A stretch of DNA of 64,000 bases from Macrostomum hystrix (Eukaryota; Animalia; Platyhelminthes): assembly GCA_950097015.1 (NCBI GenBank), contig CATNEN010000003.1:11160001-11224000 (forward strand), in the 5' to 3' direction. This document shows, one piece after another, positions 11,001-63,990 of the stretch. Both the position numbers and the translations under genes were made by a program. The notes under the pieces were generated by a model. It saw only the letters and a list, made by a program, of their open reading frames with translations, was not told where the DNA came from and did no database searches. Position 1 is the stretch's first letter; the number at the start of each line of letters is the position of its first letter.

Positions 11001-14000
11001 CCTCGAACTGCAGCAGCAGCTGAGGCAGCTCAGCCATGGCGTCTCTCAATGCACCGGCTGCCCGATTCAACGCTTCGCTCACTCTCTCAGCTGATGTGGG
11101 CGACTTCAAGCCTTTCAGGTACACAGCGGCATCCCTCAGGAAGAAGTGCTTCAGGATCCGACCATTAGGTTTTTCTGATCTGCAGCCGCTTTCCACACCG
11201 GCAAGTAAAATCTGCAGCGAGCGTCTCGTGAGACTCACGAGATTCTCCGGCTTCCACTGCTCAGCCGGTGTCTCCTCCAGCATTCGGAACGTGACGGTCT
11301 TTGCGTGATAGGACTTGAAGCCGACGTTTGAGATCTTCTTCTTCAGCAGCCACTTGAGTGTGACGAACAGCTGGCCTTGCAGAGTGCTGAGACTCCGCAG
11401 CAGTCGCCTCTCCAGGAAGCTGCTGCTCACTCGGAGCTCCTGGCCCCCTATTCCGGGAGGACTTACTGAGTGACAGGGCGATGAGGCAGAGGTAAGGTCT
11501 CGCTCGAGCGACTGCAGCACGGACTGGGGGATGTTGGAGTTGGAGACTCTTGGTGGCTGCAGCGGTGCGATGGGAGGGTAGCGGCAGAGGCGGATGGCGG
11601 GGACTCGGTCCACACTCGGTCTCGGTGGTGAACTAATCCTTGATGTGATGACTTCGTAGTCTGAAGTTAATATTAGTTTTGCAAAGTTTTTAACTTTAAG
11701 ATAAAAACATGAAATAGTGGAAGAATATATGTATACTTCTAGCTATACATTTTTGTTAAATAAATCATAGAAGGAAATAAAGATGAACATCTTAGTTTTA
11801 GCTCGCTAGCTACTTTATATGTCGGTATATGTTGACCATCGGTAAATGGTACGTTCGTCACACATCTCAACAGCTTCGCAATATCTCAATTTTTAAAGTT
11901 CACAAATATATTTTCAAAACGTATGATAAATTCTTGCTGGGAGTATCGCGGTTAGCTAAAAAACGCGATAGCATTTTTATTAGCTAATCTGATGAAATTA
12001 TAATATTTAGACGAGGAATTGCATGCGCGGCTTAAGACAATGACGTTTTTGTTTCTATCAGTGAATTTAATTAGTTATCGGACGGGAATCGTCATTTATT
12101 GAAATTATGATTATCAGTATTTGAATTTCGGCAATATACTCAGAAACATTAAAAACCGCCACCCTAGAGCGAGGGGAACGGTTGATCTCAACTCACTGCC
12201 GCAAATTACGTAATGTGCACCTGACAGCAAGGAGAGCTACCGTGGGAGAGTGGGTGGGTAAAGGGTTATCGCGAAGTTCAAAATGGATGATTTAGCACAC
12301 TCAGTCAAAATGCAGCTAACGAATAATTAGTATTAGTCGTTATCTCCAAAGTGGTCCGCCACATGACCGATGGCGAGCCATAGGCATGCTTTAGGCCGGA
12401 ATGTCCATCCGAGCAGTAGCCCGTCAATTCGGCAGATCACCTACGACGATTCGCAGCCTTTTGCAGAAGTCCAGAGACACTGGCAGTGTCACGCACGCAA
12501 GTCGTGGAGTCCAGCGCCGTCATCTGCGCAGCACAGCAAGGGCTGATCGGCGACTGCTGCGAATTGTGAGGGGAAACCCCACCTTGCCTGCCATGAGTTC
12601 TCACATTAAGTTCGGCTTGTACTAGCAACATTTGTAATTTAATAACACACCCCAATTTCCATGCTACTCTCAGGTAGTTTGACTCTCTTTCGTTTCTCTG
12701 GCTACGGAGTCGGGGTGGGTGAGCAGAGTGCATTGCGTCATTCGCGGTTTTTCACCTCTCTCTCAGGTGCACATTGCGGCATTTGTGGTAGTGAGTTGAG
12801 ATGAATCGTTTCCCTCGCTCTAGGGTGGCGGTTTTTAATGTTGCTGAGTGTCTTTACTAAGTCTTTAGTATGTCTTTGTTGTTAAAACGAATTCCCCGAA
12901 GTACTGGGGAGCGGGTCAGTTCCGAGGAACTCTGCCGCTATATTTTTTTATATATTTAATCGAAATTTATTTAAAATATACAAGCGTTTCGATCTGGATT
13001 ATACGAATATTGAAAATAAAAATAAAACAATAAAACAATAATTCAATATTTGGCAATATTTGGGCACGCATTGGAAGATAAAAGGGGAGAAATATACAAA
13101 GGGAATCCCGCACAAAGAAGGGATCTAATAAAAAAGGGAAATCTAAAAGGCATGCATGCAAGATATTTGTGAGCGCAATTAAAAGCAATTAGAATATTTG
13201 TTAGCAAAAATAGAAAATAAAAATAGTAAATTAAACCATGAAATGCGAATTAAAAACATTTCTAGGCAATGCGGTACATATTACGTATAAAAATAGGCAA
13301 AAGTAAAAAGAAAGGATTTTTTTGGGAATTAAAAACTCTGGTGTGTAAAGAGCTAGCAGTTTATGAGCAAATAGCAACATAACAAAAGCAAAAAGTACTT
13401 TTTAGGCAATAAAATCACGTTAATCAGTTTGAAAAAACGTAAAGAATATAATATCATAGCAGCTGAGCACTGCTCACCAGCCCTCTTGAGCTCAGGCAGC
13501 TATTTGAGTTTCATTTTGGTTTTTCTTTCAGGGCCATAGTTGTCAGAGACTGCTCAACCCTGGATTTGGAGTCGGTTCTGCCTGTTGATTTGTCCCCGCC
13601 TCAGGGTAGCCCACAGGACATTGAGGATGGGGACTCGGCCCGGAGCGCGAGGCAGCTCCGGCTCGATGTGGAAGCCGTGCAGCCGAGCTGCTCTCATCTT
13701 GAGCAGCCAGGCCACACCGAGCTGTTTGACTCTGGCCGAGAGCATTGGCATGCCGGCCAGTTTGTGAAGGTACTCGGTGCTCAGGTAGGAAGGCACACCG
13801 TAGCAGATTCGCAGAGCAAGGTTCTGGATCTTTTGTAGCTTGATCTGGTTGGTGACGCAGATCAGAGTCAAGATTGGGGCGCCGTAGGTGAGAGCGCTCT
13901 CACCGTAGGCCCTGTACAGCATCTTGAGAGTGACGCTGCTCAGCTTGGTGATCTTGGCGATGCGGCACAGGGACATGACAATGGCCCTGCACGTGTTCGC

Positions 14001-17000
14001 CATGTTGTCGACGTGTTTATTTAGGCAAAGATTGGCGTCGAGGAGGACACCTAGAAATTTTACTTCCTGACAGTAGGGGACCTCCGTCTGCCCCAGCTGC
14101 AGTTTGGGTCGCAAGTCGGCGCGAGCTGTCGGCTTGTAGTTGAAGGCGATGGCCTTGCTCTTGTCGGCATTCAGTCTGATGCCTTGCTTTCCGCACCACT
14201 CCCAGACTTGTCTGAGGTAGCTCTGGAGGCATGTCCGCAGACCAGCAAAGGTGTCTGCGGAGGCCCAGATGGCCATGTCGTCAGCAAATTGACTGCGTTT
14301 CACGTTTGGATTCTCAGGAATCGGCATTGTGCTGACGTACAGCAGGTACAGGAGAGGACTCAAGATGCCTTCCTGAGGTACGCCAGCTAGGATTCTGATC
14401 AGCTCACTGAGCGAGTTGTTGACTCGCACCTGGATGTACCTGTTCCTGAGGTAGTCAGACAGGATGCGCGTCAGCATTGAAGGAAAGCCAGCGTTGAGCA
14501 TGCGGCTCCTGAGCATGTCGTGCCAGGCAGAGTCAAAGGCCGCCTCTACATCAAGGAAGACTGCAGCGGCCCTCTTTGCTTTGCACTTTGCGACCATCAT
14601 GTCCTGCACCAGTCGGCACAGGTTGTCGTAGGTGGAGTGGACTTTGCGATAAGCGCATTGGTCATCGCCAAGAATGTTCTTGTCCTCAAGGTATTTGGAG
14701 AGTCTCTTGGCAATCAGCTTCTCAAACACCTTGCCTAAGCAAGAGGTCAGGCTGATTGGCCTGTACGAGTTTGGATTGTCTGGCGGTTTGTCAGGCTTCG
14801 GGATCATTGTCACCACAGCTTTCTTCCAAGCGCTGGGGAAGATCCCTTGACTGAAGCAGGCGTTAAAGAGTTTGGTGATCCTGGTGATCGCCACGCCTTC
14901 AAGGCCGAGTTTGAGCACTCGATTGGGAATCTTATCCAGCCCGGGTGCTCCATCAGGCTTGAGGTGCTCAAGCTCCCACACTGTGTCGGCTACAGTGAAT
15001 GCGGCTTCAAGCGGGTGAGTGGCTATGCCATTGATGTCGGCCGGAATCGGATAGAAAGCGATGAACTTGGCCACTTCGGCCACCTCCTGTTTGAGCTGCT
15101 CGCAAGTGGATGGGACTGGGCGCATCTTTGAGTCCAGAGTGGCAGCGAGAAGGTTCGCTTTCTCCAGATCAGTGTGCGCACTGGTTTGACCCGAAGTGAG
15201 GGTTGGGATGGAGCTGGGCTTGAACTTGCCCATCAGCTTCCTGGTGTCATGCCAGAAGTTCTTGACCTTGCTGTTCTTGCTGTTCTCGACAACATTCTCA
15301 CACAGCTTGGTGAGCTTGCCGCTCTGGAAGGAAGTGATTTCCCTTTTGATCCTGTTGGCCATTTGGTTGGCCAGCCTTTTAAAGTTTTCATCCCGGGTGC
15401 TGTTGAAGAGGCGTCTGAGTCGTCGGCGCTCTCTAATCAGCTCAAGGATGTGCTTGGGCAGAGCATTTCGGCCACCACAGTCTGGCACAGTCGACTCAAT
15501 GACCGTGTGGATGGCCTTTGTGATGAGCTCGACCTCGGCGTCGATTTGCTGAGCACTCGATAGGCGAGTCGGCTGGTCAGGAAGAAGGGCTTCACTGATC
15601 TTCAGCCTGAACTGATCCCAGTCGGTTTTGGAAAAGTTTTTCGGCTTAGCGGGACCTGCCCACTTTGCCGACTGAATGTTGAGGGTGAGGATGATTGGCA
15701 GGTGGTCGCTGTCCAGGTCGGGACCGACTGCAAAGTCCTGCACAAAGGGCAGAAAGTCCTCCGTGGCCAGGCCGAGGTCCAAGACATTCCTGGAAGTGAC
15801 GCCATTCTTGGTGGCGATTCTGGTGAACTGGCCAACTTGATTGAGGATGGTGGGCGAGGCCAGACCTTCAGAGAGCCAGTCGTACAGCTCATGGCCAGCC
15901 CTGTTGTTGCTGCTGTCACCGCCAAGGAAGCGGTGTCTGGCATTGAGGTCGCCAAGGAGAACACTGCGTCTGCGCGAGACCAGGCTCTTGAGCAGGTTCA
16001 GGTTCAGGTGGTAAGGTGCCGGAGACCTGTACACCAGAGCCAGATTAAAGTCGGCACCGTGAGAGTTGTCAGACAGGCTGACGGTGCAGGAGATGGCTTC
16101 ATGGTTCACATTGTCGTAGTGCAAGCGAACATTTGTGAGTTTCACGCGCGGTGAGTGAGCAAGGAGCAGGCCGCGTCTGACATGCGGAGTGTCGTACCGG
16201 ATGATGGAGTAGCCAGGGATCTGGACCGTGTGCGAACTCTTGAGAATGGTTTCAGAGAAGAGAGCAATGTCTATCTCTTGACTAATGACCCATTGGGTGA
16301 GTTCTCTGCTTTTCGGGTGAAACCCTCTGCAGTTGAGGTGCATAATTTTCAGACCCGTTGTCTGGGTAATAGGGTTCCCATTTAAATTGAGGAATTTACA
16401 GTTTTCTGGTTTAGCTGCCTGGGCCCACGACCACGGTGGCGGTGGAGGCCATGCCAGACACGTCCTGGAGGACAGCCCGCACAATGTCCTCAACCATTTT
16501 ACTGGTCGATTCCACTGTGAGGAGCTCACCAGGCGGCCTGGACAGGGCCCGCACAATCACCTGGGTCAGAGAGCGGGTGATCAGGGGCAACAGCATGCTC
16601 ACCATCTGCTTCAAGTCAGTCTGCTGCTGCTGCTGTGGCTCACTGCCAGCGTCCAGGGAGGGTGCAGCCTCATTGGCGCTCGTGCACCTGGCGCTGACAG
16701 TCTCGGCAGCCGGTCGGCTCCTGGCATCATCGTTGCTGATGAACAGCGGCCGGATGGCGGCATTGACGGGCACGTTGCGGCGGCCTTGGCGCATCAGCCA
16801 GCCACTGTCCGAAGCGTCGGACACGTCGGCGGGCGCACTCGAGGCAGGCGGAGCATCCGTAGCCGCGGCTTCCGCAGCTCGCGCCGCAGCAGCTTTGGCC
16901 TCAGCTGCCGCCTTCGTCGCCTTGGCGTGCTCCTCCTGCGCAACAGTGCAGGCTCGGCTGGTCGTGCGGTGCTGACCACCGCAGTTGGAGCATGTCGCCG

Positions 17001-20000
17001 GGCCTTCGTGCTGGCAGTCCTTCCAGGCATGCGAGCCGCCGCAGATTCGGCATCGCAGCTCCACCTGGCACTGAGCTGCACGGTGGCCGAACTGCTGGCA
17101 GCGCTGGCACTGCAGGGCGCGGACCGGCTCGTCGGTGCGGCTCTCTTCGCAGCTGAACTTCAGAAAGTCAGTGCAGATGCCTTCGCGAAGGCACTGGTCG
17201 AATGTCGCTCTCGACTTCGTAAAGATGCGCATGTACCGGGTGGCCTGCCCGGATGCTCGCGCACGGATCCGATGCACACTCGTGATATCGAGCTTCAGGG
17301 ACTCGCGGAGCATGCTGGCGAATTCGGCTTCCGTGAAGGAAAACGGCACGTCGAGCGCCACAAAGGTGAGCAGTGGCTGCTGCCGTACTCTGTCAGCGCC
17401 AGTCCGGTTGTCCAGCGGCCGTGATCGTGCTGGTCGACGCTCGACACGGTGTCCGAGGAGGCTGTCCTGACGCAGAGCACCGCCTAGGAAGACGTTGTAA
17501 TCCCGCTCAGTGGCCGGGAATACTAGGTAGGCGGGCTGATTGGCCATTTCGGCTGTGTTGACGGCACGGGCATCGCCGGCAAAGTTGGCCTGCAGCCAGG
17601 TGATGAAGGCCACCAGCTTGCCCGCCGCGTTTCGGTGCACTTCAAAGACCACCGGTGGAATGGCAGCCTGGGGTCTTCGCAATGGAGCGCGGGCCGAAGC
17701 CACCTGCGCATAGGGCCGCGCTGTCGCAGCCTGGGTCGTTGAAGCAGCCGCCGCTGCCGCCGCCGCCGACGCCGCCGACGAACCCGTCACCGCGGTCGCC
17801 GACGCTGCCGCCGCACCAGCCGCCGCACCTCGGCCGCCGCCGCCACCTCGCGTGCCTCGCTGTCTGCCGCCGCCGCCACCGCGGCTGCCTCGCTGCTGAC
17901 CGCCGCCGCCGCGCTGACCACGTGCGCCGCGCTGACCGCCGCCGCCGCGCTCTGCCTGCTGGTCCTGGGGCTGGCCTGGGTTGCCTTGCCGGTCGCCGAA
18001 GGGACCGCAGTCCAGTGGCTGGCTGTAGGTTGGGTCGTCGGTCGCCGCCCTCTTGCGCCGCAGCTCCGGCTTGGTGACGCGGAACGTCAGTGAGATGCGG
18101 ACGCCGGTCTGGGTGCGAACTGCAGGCACCTGATGCTGCAGCCGCTTTTGACAATTGCCTCCCATGAGGATCAGCGATCCCGGGAGCGTCTGAAATCGAT
18201 GCGTGACGTTTCCGTCACGTCGACGCAACATAAAAGTTCGCTCAGCGCCGAACGACACTGTAGCGATGGTCGGCTTGTCGCCGAGCTCCTCCTCGTCATC
18301 CGCATGCCACGGAATCCGGTCCTCCGGCTCGGTGTAGAAGTTCACCAGAACGGAGTTGAACTTCGGGACCTCGAGCCCAGCATCGTCGTAAAGGAAGTCA
18401 CGAATGTCTTCGATTACTGGATGCCAGGTTTGATTTTCCTTCAGCTCAACCCCGCTGTAGGTGTACGCCGGGCCGATCCAGAAGACACGGCGCTGCTCGT
18501 GCGGGCGATGACGGAAGGCGAGTGGGAGCACGTCTGCCATCAGGCGCTGGTATATTTGGTCAGCGACCTCGCCAAGAAAGTAGGGCGCGTAGACGATGGT
18601 GCAGTCGCCCGCGTAGGTCGTCTGCTGGCACTCGCTGAAGTCCGGCTCGTCAGGGAAGACGATCTGCGAGATGTCGGCGTCTGACTGTGCAGCGGTGGGC
18701 TTCGGAATTGTCGTCTGGGCAATAGCAGCCGACTCGGATGCTGTTGGCGCTGGCGCAGGTGCTGCCGCAGCCTCAGTCTGTTGAGCAGCCGTCTCGGCTG
18801 CCTCGGCTTCATCGACGGACATTCTGTCGGCCGTCTCGTTTGAGTCCGCAGTCGCGGGGGCCGCAGTCACTGCTGGAGGCTCGTCTTCGACGATGACAAG
18901 CCGACCTTCTGGTGGGCTGAACGAGCCGCGGTCTTGGGCGCTGTTGGCCGGTTCTGAGGTCTCGCTGGCCGGCGTCGGAGTCGACATCAGCGCTGTCGCG
19001 ACCTTCGGCTGCAGCTTGCGACTGGCGTCTTCGGTGCGGCCGTACCGATGCTCGAGCGAGGGGCGGCCGTCGTGTTTTTTTGAAGTTGTGGCGCGATTCG
19101 CAGCCATATGGCGTGATTTCTCACTGGTGCAAGGTAAACAAAATAAGCAAAGGGGGCAGGTGGCACACAAAGTGCGCACTCAAGGGAGGGGGTGGGGGAC
19201 TGCTAGACTAAAACTAAAACTAAAACTACAAGTACAGGGGGAGAGAGAGACTGCAAAAATAAAACTAAAACAGGTGAGAATGAACAAGGAGCACTATAGG
19301 GAGCTTACTGGTGTACTTTAAAAGTACCCCCTTCTAGGAATGGGGTTGCACAAATCAAGGAACACTCAATGAATGTACCTCTCCACGGAAATCTTTAGTA
19401 AAAGGCGAAAGATTTAAGCGTGGAATGAAGAGAAACCATGTCTTTAGTATGTCTTTAAAATGTCTTTAGTAAGAAAAAAATAGACAGGACTTTCTCGCAG
19501 CCAGGCAGTAATTAAAATATGAAATAATGAATTAATGAACTAAACAGTAAGAATTTAAAAGGAATGAGATTAACGCTAAAGCTGTGGAAGCGACAAACTA
19601 GGTGAACAATGGTTTTTAGTGAACTTAAAAGAGTTTCTGATAACTTTAAAGTAGTCAATGAAAAACTATATATATATTATATTATAATTGTACGAAAAAC
19701 TCGTAGGCCGTTAATGGCACATCATTTGGTGACACTAGACCCGCAGCCAGCGAGGAGGCAATTCTGCCCATTCCGCTGACCCCTGAGCACACACGCACAC
19801 AGATACTGTACGCAGGCAAACGCTCACACAGGTGTGTACATCTGCCCTGACTTTCTCATCGGCAGGCTGTGTACAATTTCACTGTGCCTTGGAGGTTGGC
19901 CCTCAAGGGCGTAAATTGCACGACAAGCCCCCAAGCCTTCTCTCCGCGGCTGCGCCCCAAATGAATGTGGCCTCGCCGCGGAAAAAAACTTTGGGACCGT

Positions 20001-55975: not shown

Positions 55976-58789
55976 TTAAATATTGTCGATGTCCACATCA
56001 GAGTCGTTATTTTCTTCAACTTCCACTTTCTTCTGCTTCTGTTGCTGCTGCTGCTGCCGCTTACCGTTGACAACGGCGTTCTTCGGTTTGGCCTTCTCAA
56101 TTACCTTTTCTTCAACTCGTTCTTCTTCCTCGCTGCTAGACTCTTCATCGGCAGTCTTTAGCCAGGTGATAAACGGGTGAGCTAGTTCGTGTATCTGCTT
56201 GCTGAGCTTGCGATCTCCAGTGTAACGCTTTGTTGGCTGCGTAAACAAACAAATTTTAAAGGCACTTTTTTAACTTGGGCAAATTTTATAGTTCTATCTT
56301 CTAAAAAACAATATTTGATATGATATGAATTTTTGTCAGGACTCAAATTTATAAGATCATGCAGACTCATAGGCCTGGACACTTGTATTATGGCATTATT
56401 TCATCATGAATTTTTTAAGTCAGGCTGGGGATCTAGATGGATGGTGGGTCAGGCTGGGGATCTAGATGGATGGTGGGTCAGGCTGAGGATCTAGATGGAT
56501 GGTGGGTCAGGCTGGGGATCTAGATGGATGGTGGGTCAGGCTGAGGATCTAGATGGATGGTGGGTCAGGCTGAGGATCTAGATGGATGGTGGGTCAGGCT
56601 GGGGATCTAGATGGATGGTGGGTCAGGCTGAGGATCTAGATGGATGGTGGGTCAGGCTGAGGATCTAGATGGATGGTGGGTCAGGCTGGGGATCTAGATG
56701 GATGGTGGGTCAGGCTGAGGATCTAGATGGATGGTGGGTCAGGCTGAGGATCTAGATGGATGGTGGGTCAGGCTGGGGATCTAGATGGATGGTGGGTCAG
56801 GCTGAGGATCTAGATGGATGGTGGGTCAGGCTGAGGATCTAGATGGATGGTGGGTCAGGCTGGGGATCTAGATGGATGGTGGGTCAGGCTGAGGATCTAG
56901 ATGGATGGTGGGTCAGGCTGAGGATCTAGATGGATGGTGGGTCAGGCTGGGGATCTAGATGGATGGTGGGTCAGGCTGAGGATCTAGATGGATGGTGGGT
57001 CAGGCTGAGGATCTAGATGAATGATGGGTCAGGCTGTGGATCCAGATGGATGATGGGTCAGGCTGAGGATCTAGATGGATGGTGGGTCAGGCTGAGGATC
57101 TAGATAATTGATGGGTCAGGCTGGGGATCCAGATGGATGGTGGGTCAGGCTGAGGATCTAGATAATTGATGGGTCAGGCTGGGGATCCAGATGGAGGGTG
57201 GGTCAGGCTGAGATCTAGATGAATCGTGGTTTTCAGCTAAGGTTATTCAAACAGTACAGAATGCATGTTAATCGAGCCATGGGAAAAGAATACAATGTAA
57301 ACTAGCATACATTACGCAGCAGAAAAAACTACTTTCTCTTAAATCATGTTACATAGATGCGAAATTTTAGTGTGTTGTTAATTTTAGAGACGAAACTAGC
57401 GCAATCCAGTGAGGGGTGGTGCGCGTACGGTCTGCAAACTTCTATGAGAAGCACGTGACAGAGAGAACTGTCATTTCCGAAAAATCTATTTATAAACTGC
57501 TTTCAAAACATTGGAATGACGCTAAGTTGGCTAGTTATACAAATACAAGACGCAAGTTAGTAATAACCACTTATTATTGTCAGCTTTGGCTTCGCGTCAG
57601 CGTTGTTATAATATTATTTTCATATTTTTGCTAACAAATCAAGATATGGACCTACCGGACATACTGACAAAATATCTGGTAGATACTGCCTAAAAATGTT
57701 CTTGCCGCTCTATCTGGTAGAGTGATAATGGATCTGGTAGAGTGACACTAGAAACAACTCAAAGGATCTGGTAGAGTGACACTAGAAACACCTCAAAGGA
57801 TCTGGTAGAGTGACACTAGAAGCACCTCAAAGGATCTGGTAGAGTGACGCTAGAAACACCTCAAAGGATCTGGTAGAGTGACACTAGAAACACCTCAAAG
57901 GATCTGGTAGAGTGACACTAGAAACACCTCAAAGGATCTGGTAGAGTGACACTAAAAACATTTCAAAGGATCTGGTAGAGTGACACTAGAAACAACTCAA
58001 AGGATCTGGTAGAGTGACACTAGAAACAACTCAAAGGATCTGGTAGAGTGACACTAGAAACACCTCAAAGGATCTGGTAGAGTGACACTAGAAACAACTC
58101 AAAGGATCTGGTAGAGTGACACTAGAAACACCTCAAAGGATCTGGTAGAGTGACACTAGAAACAACTCAAAGGATCTGGTAGAGTGACACTAGAAACACC
58201 TCAAAGGATCTGGTAGAGTGACACTAGAAACACCTCAAAGGATCTGGTAAAGTGACACTAGAAACACTCAAAGGATCTGGTAGAGTGACACCCTTAATAC
58301 CTTTAGGTATCCGGTAGGTGCTAGCCAAAAAAACCCTAAATGACTTGCTAAATCGCTGCTAGAAAATAAAAAAGCATGGAAAAAACGCTAAGATTGGGCT
58401 ACAAACAGTTACAAGGAAAACTCACCCCTTTCTCGTCCCACTCAATGAGAGCTTCCTCAGACAGCAGATCGGCGTTGTAGAACGCATTCAACAAGTTTGG
58501 AATTCGCTTGGCATCTAGCAGGGCATCCTTGTAACGCTGCACCAACGACTCGACGGCGCCAATTAGATATTTCTGCGAGCGAACATTGCCGCTAGTGAAG
58601 GCTAGGAACACCGAACGATAGTTTTTGGTGATGTCAGCAACTAGAGTGCCAGGATTTGTTAGCAGCACTTCGGCGACAACAACAACAGCTTTGTCGCGAA
58701 TATCTAGACGATCGGCCTCTTGAACTAGTTCATGCGGTGTGGCGTTGGTGAACCCGGCAGCCAGCTTGTCAGATAGAAGCTTGTGGAAG
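55976..58789 (-). CDS. EIF5: Eukaryotic translation initiation factor 5, 3' exons (58789-58426, 56236-55976); 5' part lies beyond the window
   Basis: W2/HEAT domain: EADRLDIRDKA, FYNADLLSEEALIEW, PFITWLKTADEES, and terminal DVDIDNI. Junction is GT-AG phase 0. Confidence 0.88.
56419..57222. repeat. 29-bp minisatellite (GTCAGGCTG[A/G]GGATCTAGATGGATGGTGG)n with an 87-bp higher-order pattern
   Basis: G,A,A variant triplets recur. Confidence 0.95.
57730..58291. repeat. 34-bp minisatellite (GGATCTGGTAGAGTGACACTAGAAACACCTCAAA)n
   Basis: Tandem periodicity. Confidence 0.95.
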
Positions 58790-58835
58790 CTGGCGAAAGT
58801 TCATAAGGGGAATAGGTTTTATAAAGACAGCAGAA

Positions 58836-61800
58836 TGAAGGAGAGGGGGAGAATGCGATGAGAGGGGAATAGTGGAAGGAGAGAGGGAGAATGCGATGAG
58901 AGGGGAATAGTGGAAGGAGAGAGGGAGAATGCGATGAGAGGGGAATAGTTGAAGGAGAGGGGGAGAATGCGATGAGAGGGGAAGAGTGGAAGGAGAGGGG
59001 GAGAATGCGATGAGAGGGGAAGAGTGGAAGGAGAGGGGGAGAATGCGATGAGATGGGAATAGTGGAAGGAGAGGGGGAGAATGCGATGAGAGGGGAAGAG
59101 TGGATGGAGAGAGGGAGAATGCGATGAGAGGGGAAGAGTGGAAGGAGAGGGGGAGAATGCGATGAGAGGGGAAGAGTGGAAGGAGAGGGGGAGAATGCGA
59201 TGAGATGGGAATAGTGGAAGGAGAGGGGGAGAATGCGATGAGAGGGGAATAGTGGAAGGAGAGGGGGAGAATGCGATGAGAGGGGAAGAGTGGAAGGAGA
59301 GGGGGAGAATGCGATGAGAGGGGAAGAGTGGAAGGAGAGGGGGAGAATGCGATGAGATGGGAATAGTGGAAGGAGAGGGGGAGAATGCGATGAGAGGGGA
59401 AGAGTGGAAGGAGAGGGGGAGAATGCGATGAGAGGGGAATAGTGGAAGGAGAGGGGGAGAATGCGATGAGAGGGGAAGAGTGGAAGGAGAGGGGGAGAAT
59501 GCGATGAGATGGGAATAGTGGAAGGAGAGGGGGAGAATGCGATGAGAGGGGAAGAGTGGAAGGAGAGGGGGAGAATGGGATGAGAGGGGAAGAGTGGAAG
59601 GAGAGGGGGAGAATGGGATGAGAGGGGAAGAGTGGAAGGAGAGGGGGAGAATGCGATGAGAGGGGAAGAGTGGAAGGAGAGGGGGAGAATGCGATGAGAG
59701 GGGAAGAGTGGAAGGAGAGGGGGAGAATGCGATGAGAGGGGAAGAGTGGAAGGAGAGGGGGAGAATGCGATGAGATGGGAATAGTGGAAGGAGAGGGGGA
59801 GAATGCGATGAGAGGGGAAGAGTGGAAGGAGAGGGGGAGAATGGGATGAGAGGGGAAGAGTGGAAGGAGAGGGGGAGAATGGGATGAGAGGGGAAGAGTG
59901 GAAGGGGAGGGGGAGAATGCGATGAGAGGGGAATAGTGGAAGGAGAGGGGGAGAATGCGATGAGAGGGGAATAGTGGAAGGAGAGGGGGAGAATGCGATG
60001 AGAGGGGAAGAGTGGAAGGAGAGGGGGAGAATGCGATGAGAGGGGAAGAGTGGAAGGAGAGGGGGAGAATGCGATGAGAGGGGAAGAGTGGAAGGAGAGG
60101 GGGAGAATGCGATGAGATGGGAATAGTGGAAGGAGAGGGGGAGAATGCGATGAGAGGGGAAGAGTGGAAGGAGAGGGGGAGAATGGGATGAGAGGGGAAG
60201 AGTGGAAGGAGAGGGGGAGAATGGGATGAGAGGGGAAGAGTGGAAGGGGAGGGGGAGAATGCGATGAGAGGGGAATAGTGGAAGGAGAGGGGGAGAATGC
60301 GATGAGAGGGGAATAGTGGAAGGAGAGGGGGAGAATGCGATGAGAGGGGAAGAGTGGAAGGAGAGGAGAATGAGATGAGAGGGGAAGAGTGGAAGGAGAG
60401 GGGGAGAATGCGATGAGAGGGGAATAGTGGAAGGAGAGGGGGAGAATGCGATGAGAGGGGAAGAGTGGAAGGAGAGGGGGAGAATGCGATGAGAGGAGAA
60501 TAGTGGAAGGAGAGGAGAATGCGATGAGAGGGGAAGAGTGGAAGGAGAGGGGGAGAATGCGATGAGAGGGGAAGAGTGGAAGGAGAGGAGAATGAGATGA
60601 GAGGGGAATAGTGGAAGGAGAGGGGGAGAATGCGATGAGAGGGGAAGAGTGGAAGGAGAGGAGAATGCGATGAGAGGGGAAGAGTGGAAGGAGAGGGGGA
60701 GAATGCGATGAGGGGAAGAGTGGAAGGAGAGGGGGAGAATGCGATGAGAGGGGAAGAGTGGAAGGAGAGGGGGAGAATGCGATGAGAGGGGAATAGTGGA
60801 AGGAGAGGAGAATGAGATGAGAGGGGAATAGTGGAAGGAGAGGGGGAGAATGCGATGAGATGGGAATAGTGGAAGGAGAGGGGGAGAATGCGATGAGAGG
60901 CGAAGAGTGGAAGGAGAGGAGAATGAGATGAGAGGGGAATAGTGGAAGGAGAGGAGAATGAGATGAGAGGGGAATAGTGGAAGGAGAGGGGGAGAATGCG
61001 ATGAGAGGGGAAGAGTGGAAGGAGAGGAGAATGCGATGAGAGGGGAAGAGTGGAAGGAGAGGGGGAGAATGCGATGAGAGGGGAAGAGTGGAAGGAGAGG
61101 GGGAGAATGCGATGAGAGGGGAAGAGTGGAAGGAGAGGAGAATGAGATGAGAGGGGAATAGTGGAAGGAGAGGGGGAGAATGCGATGAGGGGAAGAGTGG
61201 AAGGAGAGGGGGAGAATGCGATGAGAGGGGAAGAGTGGAAGGAGAGGGGGAGAATGCGATGAGGGGAAGAGTGGAAGGAGAGGGGGAGAATGCGATGAGA
61301 GGGGAAGAGTGGAAGGAGAGGGGGAGAATGCGATGAGAGGGGAATAGTGGAAGGAGAGGAGAATGAGATGAGAGGGGAATAGTGGAAGGAGAGGGGGAGA
61401 ATGCGATGAGATGGGAATAGTGGAAGGAGAGGGGGAGAATGCGATGAGAGGCGAAGAGTGGAAGGAGAGGAGAATGAGATGAGAGGGGAATAGTGGAAGG
61501 AGAGGAGAATGAGATGAGAGGGGAATAGTGGAAGGAGAGGGGGAGAATGCGATGAGAGGGGAAGAGTGGAAGGAGAGGAGAATGCGATGAGAGGGGAAGA
61601 GTGGAAGGAGAGGGGGAGAATGCGATGAGAGGGGAAGAGTGGAAGGAGAGGGGGAGAATGCGATGAGAGGGGAAGAGTGGAAGGAGAGGAGAATGAGATG
61701 AGAGGGGAATAGTGGAAGGAGAGGGGGAGAATGCGATGAGAGGGGAAGAGTGGAAGGAGAGGGGGAGAATGCGATGAGAGGGGAATAGTGGAAGGAGAGG

Positions 61801-63990
61801 AGAATGAGATGAGAGGGGAATAGTGGAAGGAGAGGGGGAGAATGCGATGAGATGGGAATAGTGGAAGGAGAGGGGGAGAATGCGATGAGAGGGGAATAGT
61901 GGAAGGAGAGGGGGAGAATGCGATGAGAGGGGAAGAGTGGAAGGAGAGGGGGAGAATGCGATGAGAGGGGAAGAGTGGAAGGAGAGGGGGAGAATGCAAT
62001 GAGAGGGGAAGAGTGGAAGGAGAGGGGGAGAATGCGATGAGAGGGGAAGAGTGGAAGGAGAGGGGGAGAATGCGATGAGGGGAAGAGTGGAAGGAGAGGG
62101 GGAGAATGCGATGAGAGGGGAAGAGTGGAAGGAGAGGGGGAGAATGCGATGAGAGGGGAATAGTGGAAGGAGAGGAGAATGAGATGAGAGGGGAATAGTG
62201 GAAGGAGAGGGGGAGAATGCGATGAGATGGGAATAGTGGAAGGAGAGGGGGAGAATGCGATGAGAGGCGAAGAGTGGAAGGAGAGGGGGAGAATGCGATG
62301 AGAGGGGAAGAGTGGAAGGAGAGGGGGAGAATGCGATGAGAGGGGAAGAGTGGAAGGAGAGGGGGAGAATGCAATGAGAGGGGAAGAGTGGAAGGAGAGG
62401 GGAGAATGGGATGAGAGGGGAAGAGTGAAAGGAGAGGGGGAGACTGCGATGAGAGGGGAAGAGTGAAAGGAGAGGGGGAGAATGGGATGAGAGGGGAAGA
62501 GTGGAAGGAGAGGGGGAGAATGCGATGAGAGGCGAAGAGTGGAAGGAGAGGGGGAGAGAATGGGATGACAGGGGAAGAGTGGAAGGGGAGGGGGAGAATG
62601 CGATGAGAGGGGAATAGTGGAAGGAGAGGGGGAGAATGCGATGAGAGGGGAATAGTGGAAGGAGAGGGGGAGAATGCGATGAGAGGGGAATAGTGGAAGG
62701 AGAGGAGAATGAGATGAGAGGGGAATAGTGGAAGGAGAGGGGGAGAATGCGATGAGAGGGGAATAGTGGAAGGAGAGGGGGAGAATGCGATGAGAGGGGA
62801 AGAGTGGAAGGAGAGGAGAATGAGATGAGAGGGGAAGAGTGGAAGGAGAGGGGGAGAATGCGATGAGAGGGGAAGAGTGGAAGGAGAGGGGGAGAATGCG
62901 ATGAGAGGAGAATAGTGGAAGGAGAGGAGAATGCGATGAGAGGGGAAGAGTGGAAGGAGAGGGGGAGAATGCGATGAGAGGGGAAGAGTGGAAGGAGAGG
63001 GGGAGAATGCGATGAGAGGGGAAGAGTGGAAGGAGAGGAGAATGAGATGAGAGGGGAATAGTGGAAGGAGAGGGGGAGAATGCGATGAGGGGAAGAGTGG
63101 AAGGAGAGGGGGAGAATGCGATGAGGGGAAGAGTGGAAGGAGAGGGGGAGAATGCGATGAGAGGGGAAGAGTGGAAGGAGAGGGGGAGAATGCGATGAGA
63201 GGGGAATAGTGGAAGGAGAGGAGAATGAGATGAGAGGGGAATAGTGGAAGGAGAGGGGGAGAATGCGATGAGAGGGGAAGAGTGGAAGGAGAGGAGAATG
63301 AGATGAGAGGGGAATAGTGGAAGGAGAGGGGGAGAATGCGATGAGAGGGGAATAGTGGAAGGAGAGGAGAATGAGATGAGAGGGGAATAGTGGAAGGAGA
63401 GGGGGAGAATGCGATGAGAGGGGAAGAGTGGAAGGAGAGGGGGAGAATGAGATGAGAGGGGAAGAGTGGAAGGAGAGGGGGAGAATGCGATGAGAGGGGA
63501 AGAGTGGAAGGAGAGGGGGAGAATGCGATGAGAGGGGAAGAGTGGAAGGAGAGGGGGAGAATGCGATGAGAGGGGAATAGTGGAAGGAGAGGGGGAGAAT
63601 GCGATGAGAGGGGAAGAGTGGAAGGAGAGGGGGAGAATGCGATGAGAGGGGAAGAGTGGAAGGAGAGGGGGAGAATGCGATGAGATGGGAATAGTGGAAG
63701 GAGAGGGGGAGAATGGGATGAGAGGGGAAGAGTGGAAGGAGAGGGGGAGAATGCGATGAGAGGCGAAGAGTGGAAGGAGAGGGGAGAGAATGGGATGACA
63801 GGGGAAGAGTGGAAGGAGAGGGGGAGAATGCGATGAGATGGGAATAGTGGAAGGAGAGGGGGAGAATGGGATGAGAGGGGAAGAGTGGAAGGAGAGGGGG
63901 AGAATGCGATGAGAGGCGAAGAGTGGAAGGAGAGGGGAGAGAATGGGATGACAGGGGAAGAGTGGAAGGGGAGGGGGAGAATGGGATGAT
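58836..63990. repeat. 5.1-kb purine-rich 38-bp satellite (GAGAGGGGGAGAATGCGATGAGAGGGGAAGAGTGGAAG)n in an eIF5 intron
   Basis: 38-bp period with 35/36-bp deletion variants. It explains the 1201-aa and 1724-aa ORFs. Confidence 0.97.

Follow-up and report, generated by a model that had tools for sequence, protein, structure and literature searches.

The window analyzed here is a 64,000-nucleotide (nt) stretch of the Macrostomum hystrix genome (assembly GCA_950097015.1; contig CATNEN010000003.1, positions 11,160,001 to 11,224,000). On its minus strand, it contains a long interspersed nuclear element (LINE), and all element features described below lie on this strand. The whole retrotransposed unit (~6.57 kb; positions 12873 to 19439) consists of a 5' module resembling U5 small nuclear RNA (snRNA), a 5' untranslated region (UTR), open reading frame 1 (ORF1), ORF2, and a 3' UTR. 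ORF1 (16411 to 19107) encodes 898 amino acids from its first ATG, and the frame is open from position 19179 (922 amino acids from a GTG). The ORF1 protein (ORF1p) contains an ALKBH3-like AlkB domain, i.e., a 2-oxoglutarate (2OG)- and Fe(II)-dependent dioxygenase domain, at residues ~161 to 344 (18076 to 18627), as indicated by Pfam, PDB, AlphaFold2 (AF2), and Foldseek. This complete and selected AlkB module of a LINE ORF1 is almost certainly real.

The AlkB domain of ORF1

The sequence-only reading of the locus had proposed an intact ALKBH2/3-like AlkB domain within a LINE ORF1, and the searches bore this out. Pfam PF13532 (2OG-FeII_Oxy_2) matched ORF1 residues 207 to 343 (E value, 1.1e-22; 81.6 bits versus a cutoff of 31.2). 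In a phmmer search of ORF1 against all PDB sequences, human ALKBH3 was the best match (E value, 1.3e-24) and ALKBH2 the next (1e-17), with identities of ~31 to 33% to the two proteins. The HxD motif, the distal His, and the RxxxxxR motif of ORF1 align residue for residue with those of ALKBH3. The corresponding residues are the Fe(II) ligands H268 and D270 (18298 to 18306), the distal Fe(II) ligand H325 (18133 to 18135), and the 2OG-binding R337 and R343 (18079 to 18099). N256 and Y258 (NxY; 18334 to 18342), which belong to the 2OG pocket, are invariant across the alignments. The motifs VNFY (18334 to 18345), WHADDE (18292 to 18309), QHQVP (18124 to 18138), and RISLTFR (18079 to 18099), as well as the RGG-rich linker and the three zinc knuckles that had been read from the letters together with them, were all found in place.

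An AF2 model of ORF1 residues 150 to 360, built on a 50-row alignment, had a mean predicted local distance difference test (pLDDT) score of 93.3 and a predicted template modeling (TM) score of 0.90. When this model was compared with known structures by Foldseek, complexes of human ALKBH3 with single-stranded DNA (ssDNA) ranked first (TM scores, 0.78 to 0.83; ~200 aligned columns), and ALKBH2 was close behind. Escherichia coli AlkB, ALKBH6, and ALKBH8 followed at lower ranks, as did ALKBH5, an eraser of N6-methyladenosine (m6A), with a TM score of only 0.60 versus 0.78 to 0.83; an ALKBH5/FTO-type m6A eraser was ruled out on these grounds as the closest kind of enzyme. In the model, the ORF1 AlkB domain is a complete ALKBH2/3-type dioxygenase fold and not a remnant. 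The region thus combines the hallmarks of the AlkB family: the profile match, the HxD...H triad, the NxY and RxxxxxR motifs, and a predicted double-stranded beta-helix core with an N-terminal nucleotide-recognition extension.

Organization of the ORF1 protein

LINE ORF1 proteins are RNA chaperones with RNA recognition motif (RRM), CCHC, PHD, or esterase modules. Downstream of its AlkB domain, the window ORF1p has a low-complexity linker that is rich in RGG on motif reading (17827 to 17952); in the other families identified in this study, a different low-complexity sequence occupies this stretch. The linker is followed by two predicted RRM-like domains (residues ~485 to 560 and ~579 to 655; 17143 to 17655). 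The AF2 model of residues 478 to 735 (pLDDT, 84) shows two beta-alpha-beta-beta-alpha-beta units and then the knuckles, and the top Foldseek matches to this model were all tandem-RRM proteins (Pub1, U2AF65, nucleolin, and HuR).

The three CCHC zinc knuckles (16948 to 17109) have the spacings CX2CX4HX4C, CX2CX3HX4C, and CX2CX3HX6C, and their Cys and His residues are invariant or nearly so between families. Of the two profiles that had been suggested as a HMMER check on ORF1, 2OG-FeII_Oxy_2 matched as described above, whereas zf-CCHC fell short: Pfam gave no match to the window ORF1 at an E value of 0.01, and weak matches were seen in the sister families only. The knuckle assignment in the window is therefore based on the Cys/His spacing and on its invariance across families. 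A search of the ESM Atlas yielded no match for ORF1 or for protein P0013.

ORF1p thus has five parts: its disordered N terminus leads into an ALKBH3-like dioxygenase, from which a flexible RGG linker extends to the pair of RRMs and finally to the three CCHC knuckles. It is a LINE chaperone of type I (RRM plus CCHC) to whose front an enzyme has been joined through a low-complexity tether.

Element boundaries and ORF2

The element had also been read as bounded by a target site duplication (TSD), and a perfect 17-nt direct repeat was indeed found at its two ends (19440 to 19456 and 12861 to 12877). The first five nucleotides of this repeat (AAAGA) may be part of the 3' end of the element. Copies on contigs C1, C12, C25, and C29 are alignable with the window element from position 19438 (or 19396) to position 12873 (or 13346) at 94 to 99.6% identity. 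The copy on C25 is flanked by a 12-nt direct repeat, unlike the 17-nt TSD of the window copy.

No poly(A) tail was found at the 3' end of the element. The 3' UTR (12873 to 13553) has a subfamily-specific interior and a common terminal motif. This motif is shared by all copies, including those whose alignment seemed to stop at 13346, and it alone appears to be required for recognition by the element's own reverse transcriptase (RT). When window positions 13346 to 12873 were compared with loci L036 and L038, the interior was wholly different between subfamilies and the last ~40 nt were conserved.

ORF2 extends from 16343 to 13554 when read from its first ATG, which lies 68 nt past the ORF1 stop codon, and its frame is open from 16556. 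It encodes an APE-type endonuclease domain (15690 to 16343; Pfam Exo_endo_phos and Exo_endo_phos_2) and then an RT domain (14046 to 14804; Pfam RVT_1; E value, 1.1e-31). Copies of the element are dispersed over contigs C1, C3, C12, C25, and C29; they have a common 3' end and TSDs and lack long terminal repeats (LTRs). The element is an APE-type LINE of full length that has been active recently. No RNase H domain was detected by Pfam in ORF2, which speaks against the I clade, although this is not itself a clade test. The ORF2 protein search returned unnamed proteins only and hence no clade label. Two of its matches, P0179 and P0180, are fish LINE-like proteins with Pfam domain PF09004. We take this domain to be named after the N terminus of ALKBH8; if so, the shared name is no proof of an AlkB catalytic domain in those LINEs.

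Copies and related families in the genome

When the complete 220-Mb assembly was searched in six frames for the AlkB domain, 82 matches were obtained. Thirteen of these were 95 to 100% identical to the window domain, and 10 of the 13 lie within full-length open ORF1 frames; the LINE family of the window is young. The remaining matches ranged down to 28 to 59% identity, many of them being located within open frames of 780 to 1,120 amino acids.

Five diverged loci (L031 to L035) were retrieved. In L031 to L034, an ORF1 with PF13532 and three CCHC knuckles precedes an ORF2 that encodes Exo_endo_phos and RVT_1 domains, and the ORF2 products are 42 to 62% identical to that of the window. In all, at least five LINE families besides that of the window have this arrangement, with AlkB domains that are 33 to 54% identical. 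L035 (C1:8051000-8059000) is a LINE of a different type, with an ORF2 that is only ~24% identical to those of the other families. Its ORF1 (853 amino acids) has the AlkB domain at the start, a coiled-coil-like middle, and an unassigned C-terminal region without knuckles, so that only the AlkB part is common to the two types. L035 is present in at least five identical copies, with copies on C9, C11, C38, and C39. A reverse search of the genome with the RRM/CCHC part of ORF1 gave 52 matches, nearly all of them directly downstream of an AlkB match, and no AlkB-less relative of the window ORF1 was seen among them. That other genomic copies share the fusion is thus shown by the 13 near-identical copies and by L031 to L034, together with L035, and these loci rule out a one-off capture.

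The genome also contains intronless stand-alone AlkB ORFs of 353 to 533 amino acids at L040 (C10:301500-309500) and L041 (C38:29651000-29658000), with duplicates on C41. Two of these ORFs stand in tandem; they have a weak zinc-finger-like N terminus, are very divergent (28 to 29% identity), and lack a neighboring RT. Either host genes or a further mobile family may be represented here. The possibility that the window AlkB is itself a host gene was rejected: the host-like stand-alone ORFs of C10 and C38 are without an RT in their vicinity and are placed outside the LINE clade described below.

Selection on the domain

In an alignment of 14 genomic domains that are 33 to 96% identical to that of the window, N256, Y258, R337, and R343 are invariant, and H268, D270, and H325 are retained in all but three copies, which are visibly decayed. 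Among 11 full-length ORF1 proteins, taken from the M. hystrix genome, from Macrostomum lignano, and from unnamed sequencing runs, none deviates at any of the seven ligand residues, and the HxD, distal His, RxxxxxR, and NxY residues are also invariant in 50 AlkB sequences.

Ratios of nonsynonymous to synonymous substitution rates (dN/dS) were estimated by the Nei-Gojobori method for pairs of copies; between families, dS is saturated. For the window and L038 (the C25 subfamily), the AlkB domain gave a dN of 0.016, a dS of 0.22, and a dN/dS of 0.07, figures that are based on 25 synonymous and 6 replacement codons, and the dN/dS over the whole of ORF1 was 0.18. The AlkB domain gave dN/dS values of 0.07 for L034 versus L026, 0.065 for L034 versus L024, and 0.11 for L033 versus L027. 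For L014 and the decayed L015, the value was 0.96, which matches the expectation for decay after insertion. Neutral evolution of the domain, named beforehand as an outcome that would count against a function, is not what was found, as dN/dS is ~0.07 in three pairs of open ORFs; a neutral passenger is rejected by these low values. The AlkB domain evolves under strong purifying selection.

Relatives elsewhere and origin of the domain

A full HMMER scan of 1.84 billion representative proteins (E value of 0.001 or better) identified 7,251 AlkB proteins, and the best matches were long proteins. Two of these are M. lignano gene models (80 to 85% identity) named "hypothetical" or "Fe2OG dioxygenase domain-containing protein," and further M. 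lignano models correspond to other families of the M. hystrix genome. Four unnamed proteins from read-archive assemblies (757 to 962 amino acids) have the same layout as the window ORF1, i.e., AlkB, RRM, and three CCHC knuckles. Word-indexed protein searches returned one bacterial-type match for the AlkB region and two unrelated fusions for the ORF1 alignment; in the latter, low-complexity words crowded the candidates, and these results have no bearing on absence.

A quick maximum likelihood tree was computed for 165 domains. One of its clades (Shimodaira-Hasegawa-like approximate likelihood ratio test [SH-aLRT] support, 98) united 13 of the 14 LINE domains from the genome with 15 long proteins from public data, and this clade grouped with animal ALKBH3 orthologs of crinoid, bird, and rodent origin (SH-aLRT support, 96). 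A more careful tree of 66 rows kept the LINE clade (support, 83/86) and its subclades (99 to 100); its backbone was without resolution and left the donor unplaced, and L035, L040, and L041 floated. A single clade for all LINE AlkB domains, L035 included, was not rejected by the approximately unbiased test (P = 0.64). We conclude that the domain is of the ALKBH2/3 type and probably nearest to ALKBH3, one or two acquisitions being both compatible with the trees. Within the lineage with CCHC knuckles, the AlkB tree and the ORF2 identities divide the families identically, a matching split that is expected for a domain inherited with its element.

Possible function of the ORF1p AlkB domain

Methylated bases may be a limiting factor in the copying of these LINEs, as suggested by the occurrence of a selected ALKBH3-like domain in several of their old families. 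Lesions such as N1-methyladenosine (m1A) and N3-methylcytosine (m3C) prevent base pairing and hence block reverse transcription, and LINE ORF1 proteins bind the RNA that encodes them. ALKBH3 and the viral AlkB proteins prefer single strands and remove m1A and m3C (PMC2553587). By analogy with other LINEs, the window ORF1p would bind its own encoding RNA in cis, and the tethered dioxygenase would then strip methyl groups from the Watson-Crick face (m1A and m3C) of the element RNA, possibly acting also on the ssDNA of the integration intermediate. The element RT would thereby be spared stalling and misincorporation. Judged from the architecture (AlkB plus two RRMs plus three CCHC knuckles), such a putative repair of the template RNA in cis would be the most economical reading, and we consider it probable, if far from assured. 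The same moderate confidence extends to the proposal as a whole, in which a selected LINE demethylase is combined with this mechanism.

Several points weigh against it. Among the sequencing runs holding the element, none is on record as RNA, and both the catalysis and the expression of the ORF1 AlkB domain are putative. The cis preference of the window ORF1p is likewise presumed from other LINEs. Enzymes of the ALKBH3 type also use ssDNA and tRNA, and the substrate could be DNA or host RNA in trans; moreover, the assignment to ALKBH3 over ALKBH2 or a bacterial-type AlkB is provisional, since the careful tree does not settle it. To our knowledge, most LINEs manage without an AlkB domain. The fusion is documented so far only in Macrostomum-type genomes and in a few proteins of unknown source, and this pattern suggests a lineage-specific pressure.

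The best surviving alternative, which we regard as rather unlikely, is an epitranscriptomic counter-defense. According to this explanation, the domain repairs no damage and instead erases host marks, either m6A or enzymatically written m1A/m3C, that flag transposon RNA for decay, sequestration, or translational repression. An AlkB protein of an orchid Ty3/Gypsy element with in vitro m6A demethylase activity has been interpreted in this way (PMC9289625), and a host-specific pressure would fit with the finding that a single host has AlkB in two LINE architectures unrelated to each other. However, both the fold and the sequence are of the ALKBH2/3 type and not of the ALKBH5/FTO type, as seen in the lower TM score of ALKBH5 and in the PDB ranking. 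A more speculative proposal, to which we likewise give low credence, is that methylated bases on transposon RNA form a genuine barrier to retrotransposition that is specific to the macrostomid flatworm lineage and may be written by the host as a defense, and that the two LINE architectures have each gained an eraser as a counter-defense, either through capture or through an exchange of ORF1 modules. If true, this would amount to an arms race between host and LINEs over RNA modification.

Repair directed at DNA is a still less probable explanation. The enzyme would act on the ssDNA of the integration intermediate (the nicked target or the first-strand cDNA) or remove the 3-methylcytosine by-product of DNA methyltransferases that target transposons. 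ALKBH3 is active on ssDNA, the best structural matches of the ORF1 domain are ALKBH3-ssDNA complexes, and M. lignano is reported to retain DNMT1, DNMT3, and ALKB2 (PMC9246332). The domain is fused, however, to the RNA-binding ORF1p and not to the DNA-handling ORF2p.

A noncatalytic role, with the domain serving as a binding or folding module or being a captured host fragment carried as a functionless passenger, is very improbable. The enzymatic activity is a prediction, which leaves some room for it, but no intact ORF1 departs from the seven metal and 2OG residues, even between families whose AlkB domains are only 33 to 54% identical, and losses are confined to decayed copies; in addition, dN/dS is ~0.07, and mere binding has no need of an HxD...H triad. 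A host ALKBH exon lying beside a single LINE copy, whether as a one-off capture, a gene-model chimera, or an assembly artifact, has next to no probability: no point supporting it was found, and against it stand the 13 near-identical copies on five contigs, the at least five further families of this genome, the M. lignano relatives, the one continuous ORF followed by APE and RT domains, and the TSD that encloses the whole unit.

Comparison with known systems

The ORF1 domain shares its fold and its Fe(II) and 2OG ligands with human ALKBH3 and ALKBH2. ALKBH3, however, is a stand-alone cellular repair enzyme, whereas the ORF1 AlkB domain is an internal module of the RNA-binding protein of a transposon. 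AlkB domains are found in the replicases of plant RNA viruses (Flexiviridae and others) (PMC544882, PMC2553587), where they repair m1A and m3C in RNA (PMC2553587). These viruses offer the closest functional analogy, as they and the window LINE are both selfish RNA-templated replicators with an AlkB of their own. The viral domain resides in the replicase of plant plus-strand RNA viruses, while that described here resides in the Gag-like ORF1p of an animal LINE, and no specific relatedness of the LINE AlkB to the viral AlkB was shown by our analyses.

A Ty3/Gypsy lineage of the orchid Phalaenopsis also encodes an AlkB dioxygenase (PMC9289625). In that case, the protein is encoded by a separate extra ORF of an LTR element, is ALKBH5/9B-like with m6A activity, and is confined to a single recent lineage (PMC9289625), whereas the window AlkB belongs to an animal non-LTR element, is fused into ORF1p, is ALKBH2/3-like, and occurs in many old families.

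The ORF1 proteins of type I LINEs (the I factor and Jockey-like elements) have RRM and CCHC modules as in the window ORF1p, which adds an N-terminal AlkB domain. In the Jockey superfamily, ORF1 is modular, and a survey of its ORF1 proteins makes no mention of AlkB or of a dioxygenase (PMC4120745). Accessory enzymes of LINEs have precedents in the ORF1 esterase of CR1-like elements and in the virus-derived helicase of lepidopteran TRAS elements (PMC3905857, PMC5563155), but these are other enzymes that presumably serve another step of the life cycle. No description of AlkB in a LINE was found in the literature searched; Repbase and most subscription journals were outside it, so that an earlier description is possible. 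A nucleic acid demethylase as a conserved ORF1 module is absent from the papers that were returned, the ORF1 survey included.

Were the domain active, methylation of bases in the template RNA (or in ssDNA) would affect reverse transcription strongly enough for selection to act against it in a natural retrotransposon, in parallel with plant RNA viruses and the one orchid LTR element. The element offers a natural setting, within a genus amenable to laboratory work, in which to study the restriction of retroelements by RNA damage or RNA marks, and it may be a source of compact, RNA-tethered ALKBH3-type enzymes for study.

U5-like module and tandem arrays

The module at the 5' end of the element (19326 to 19444) matches positions 1 to 117 of the Rfam model of U5 snRNA (RF00020; 75.3 bits). 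It heads every copy compared (the window copy and L036 to L039), which rules out a one-off chimera, and in two dispersed copies (those of the window and C25), it lies inside TSDs that differ from each other. Because of its position inside different TSDs and its presence at the head of all compared copies, the module is considered to be inherited with the element. A master copy might be transcribed from the U5 5' end through cotranscription with a genuine U5 gene.

At C12:3.678-3.694 Mb, C29:3.901-3.935 Mb, and C1:13.534-13.543 Mb (L036, L037, and L039), units of the element are arrayed head to tail and recur every ~6.5 kb. The later units of these arrays begin within the U5-like module, right after AAAGA, which is also the 3' end of the element. 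This structure is compatible with repeated insertion at the AAAGA motif or with microhomology joining. The target of the window copy also contains ACTAAAGAC repeats.

Other features of the window

Far from the element, positions 56419 to 63989 of the window are occupied by three adjacent satellite arrays with units of 29 bp (28 copies), 34 bp (17 copies), and 38 bp (138 copies or more), the last being purine rich and extending to the end of the window. These arrays account for the extreme GC and AT skew of this region.

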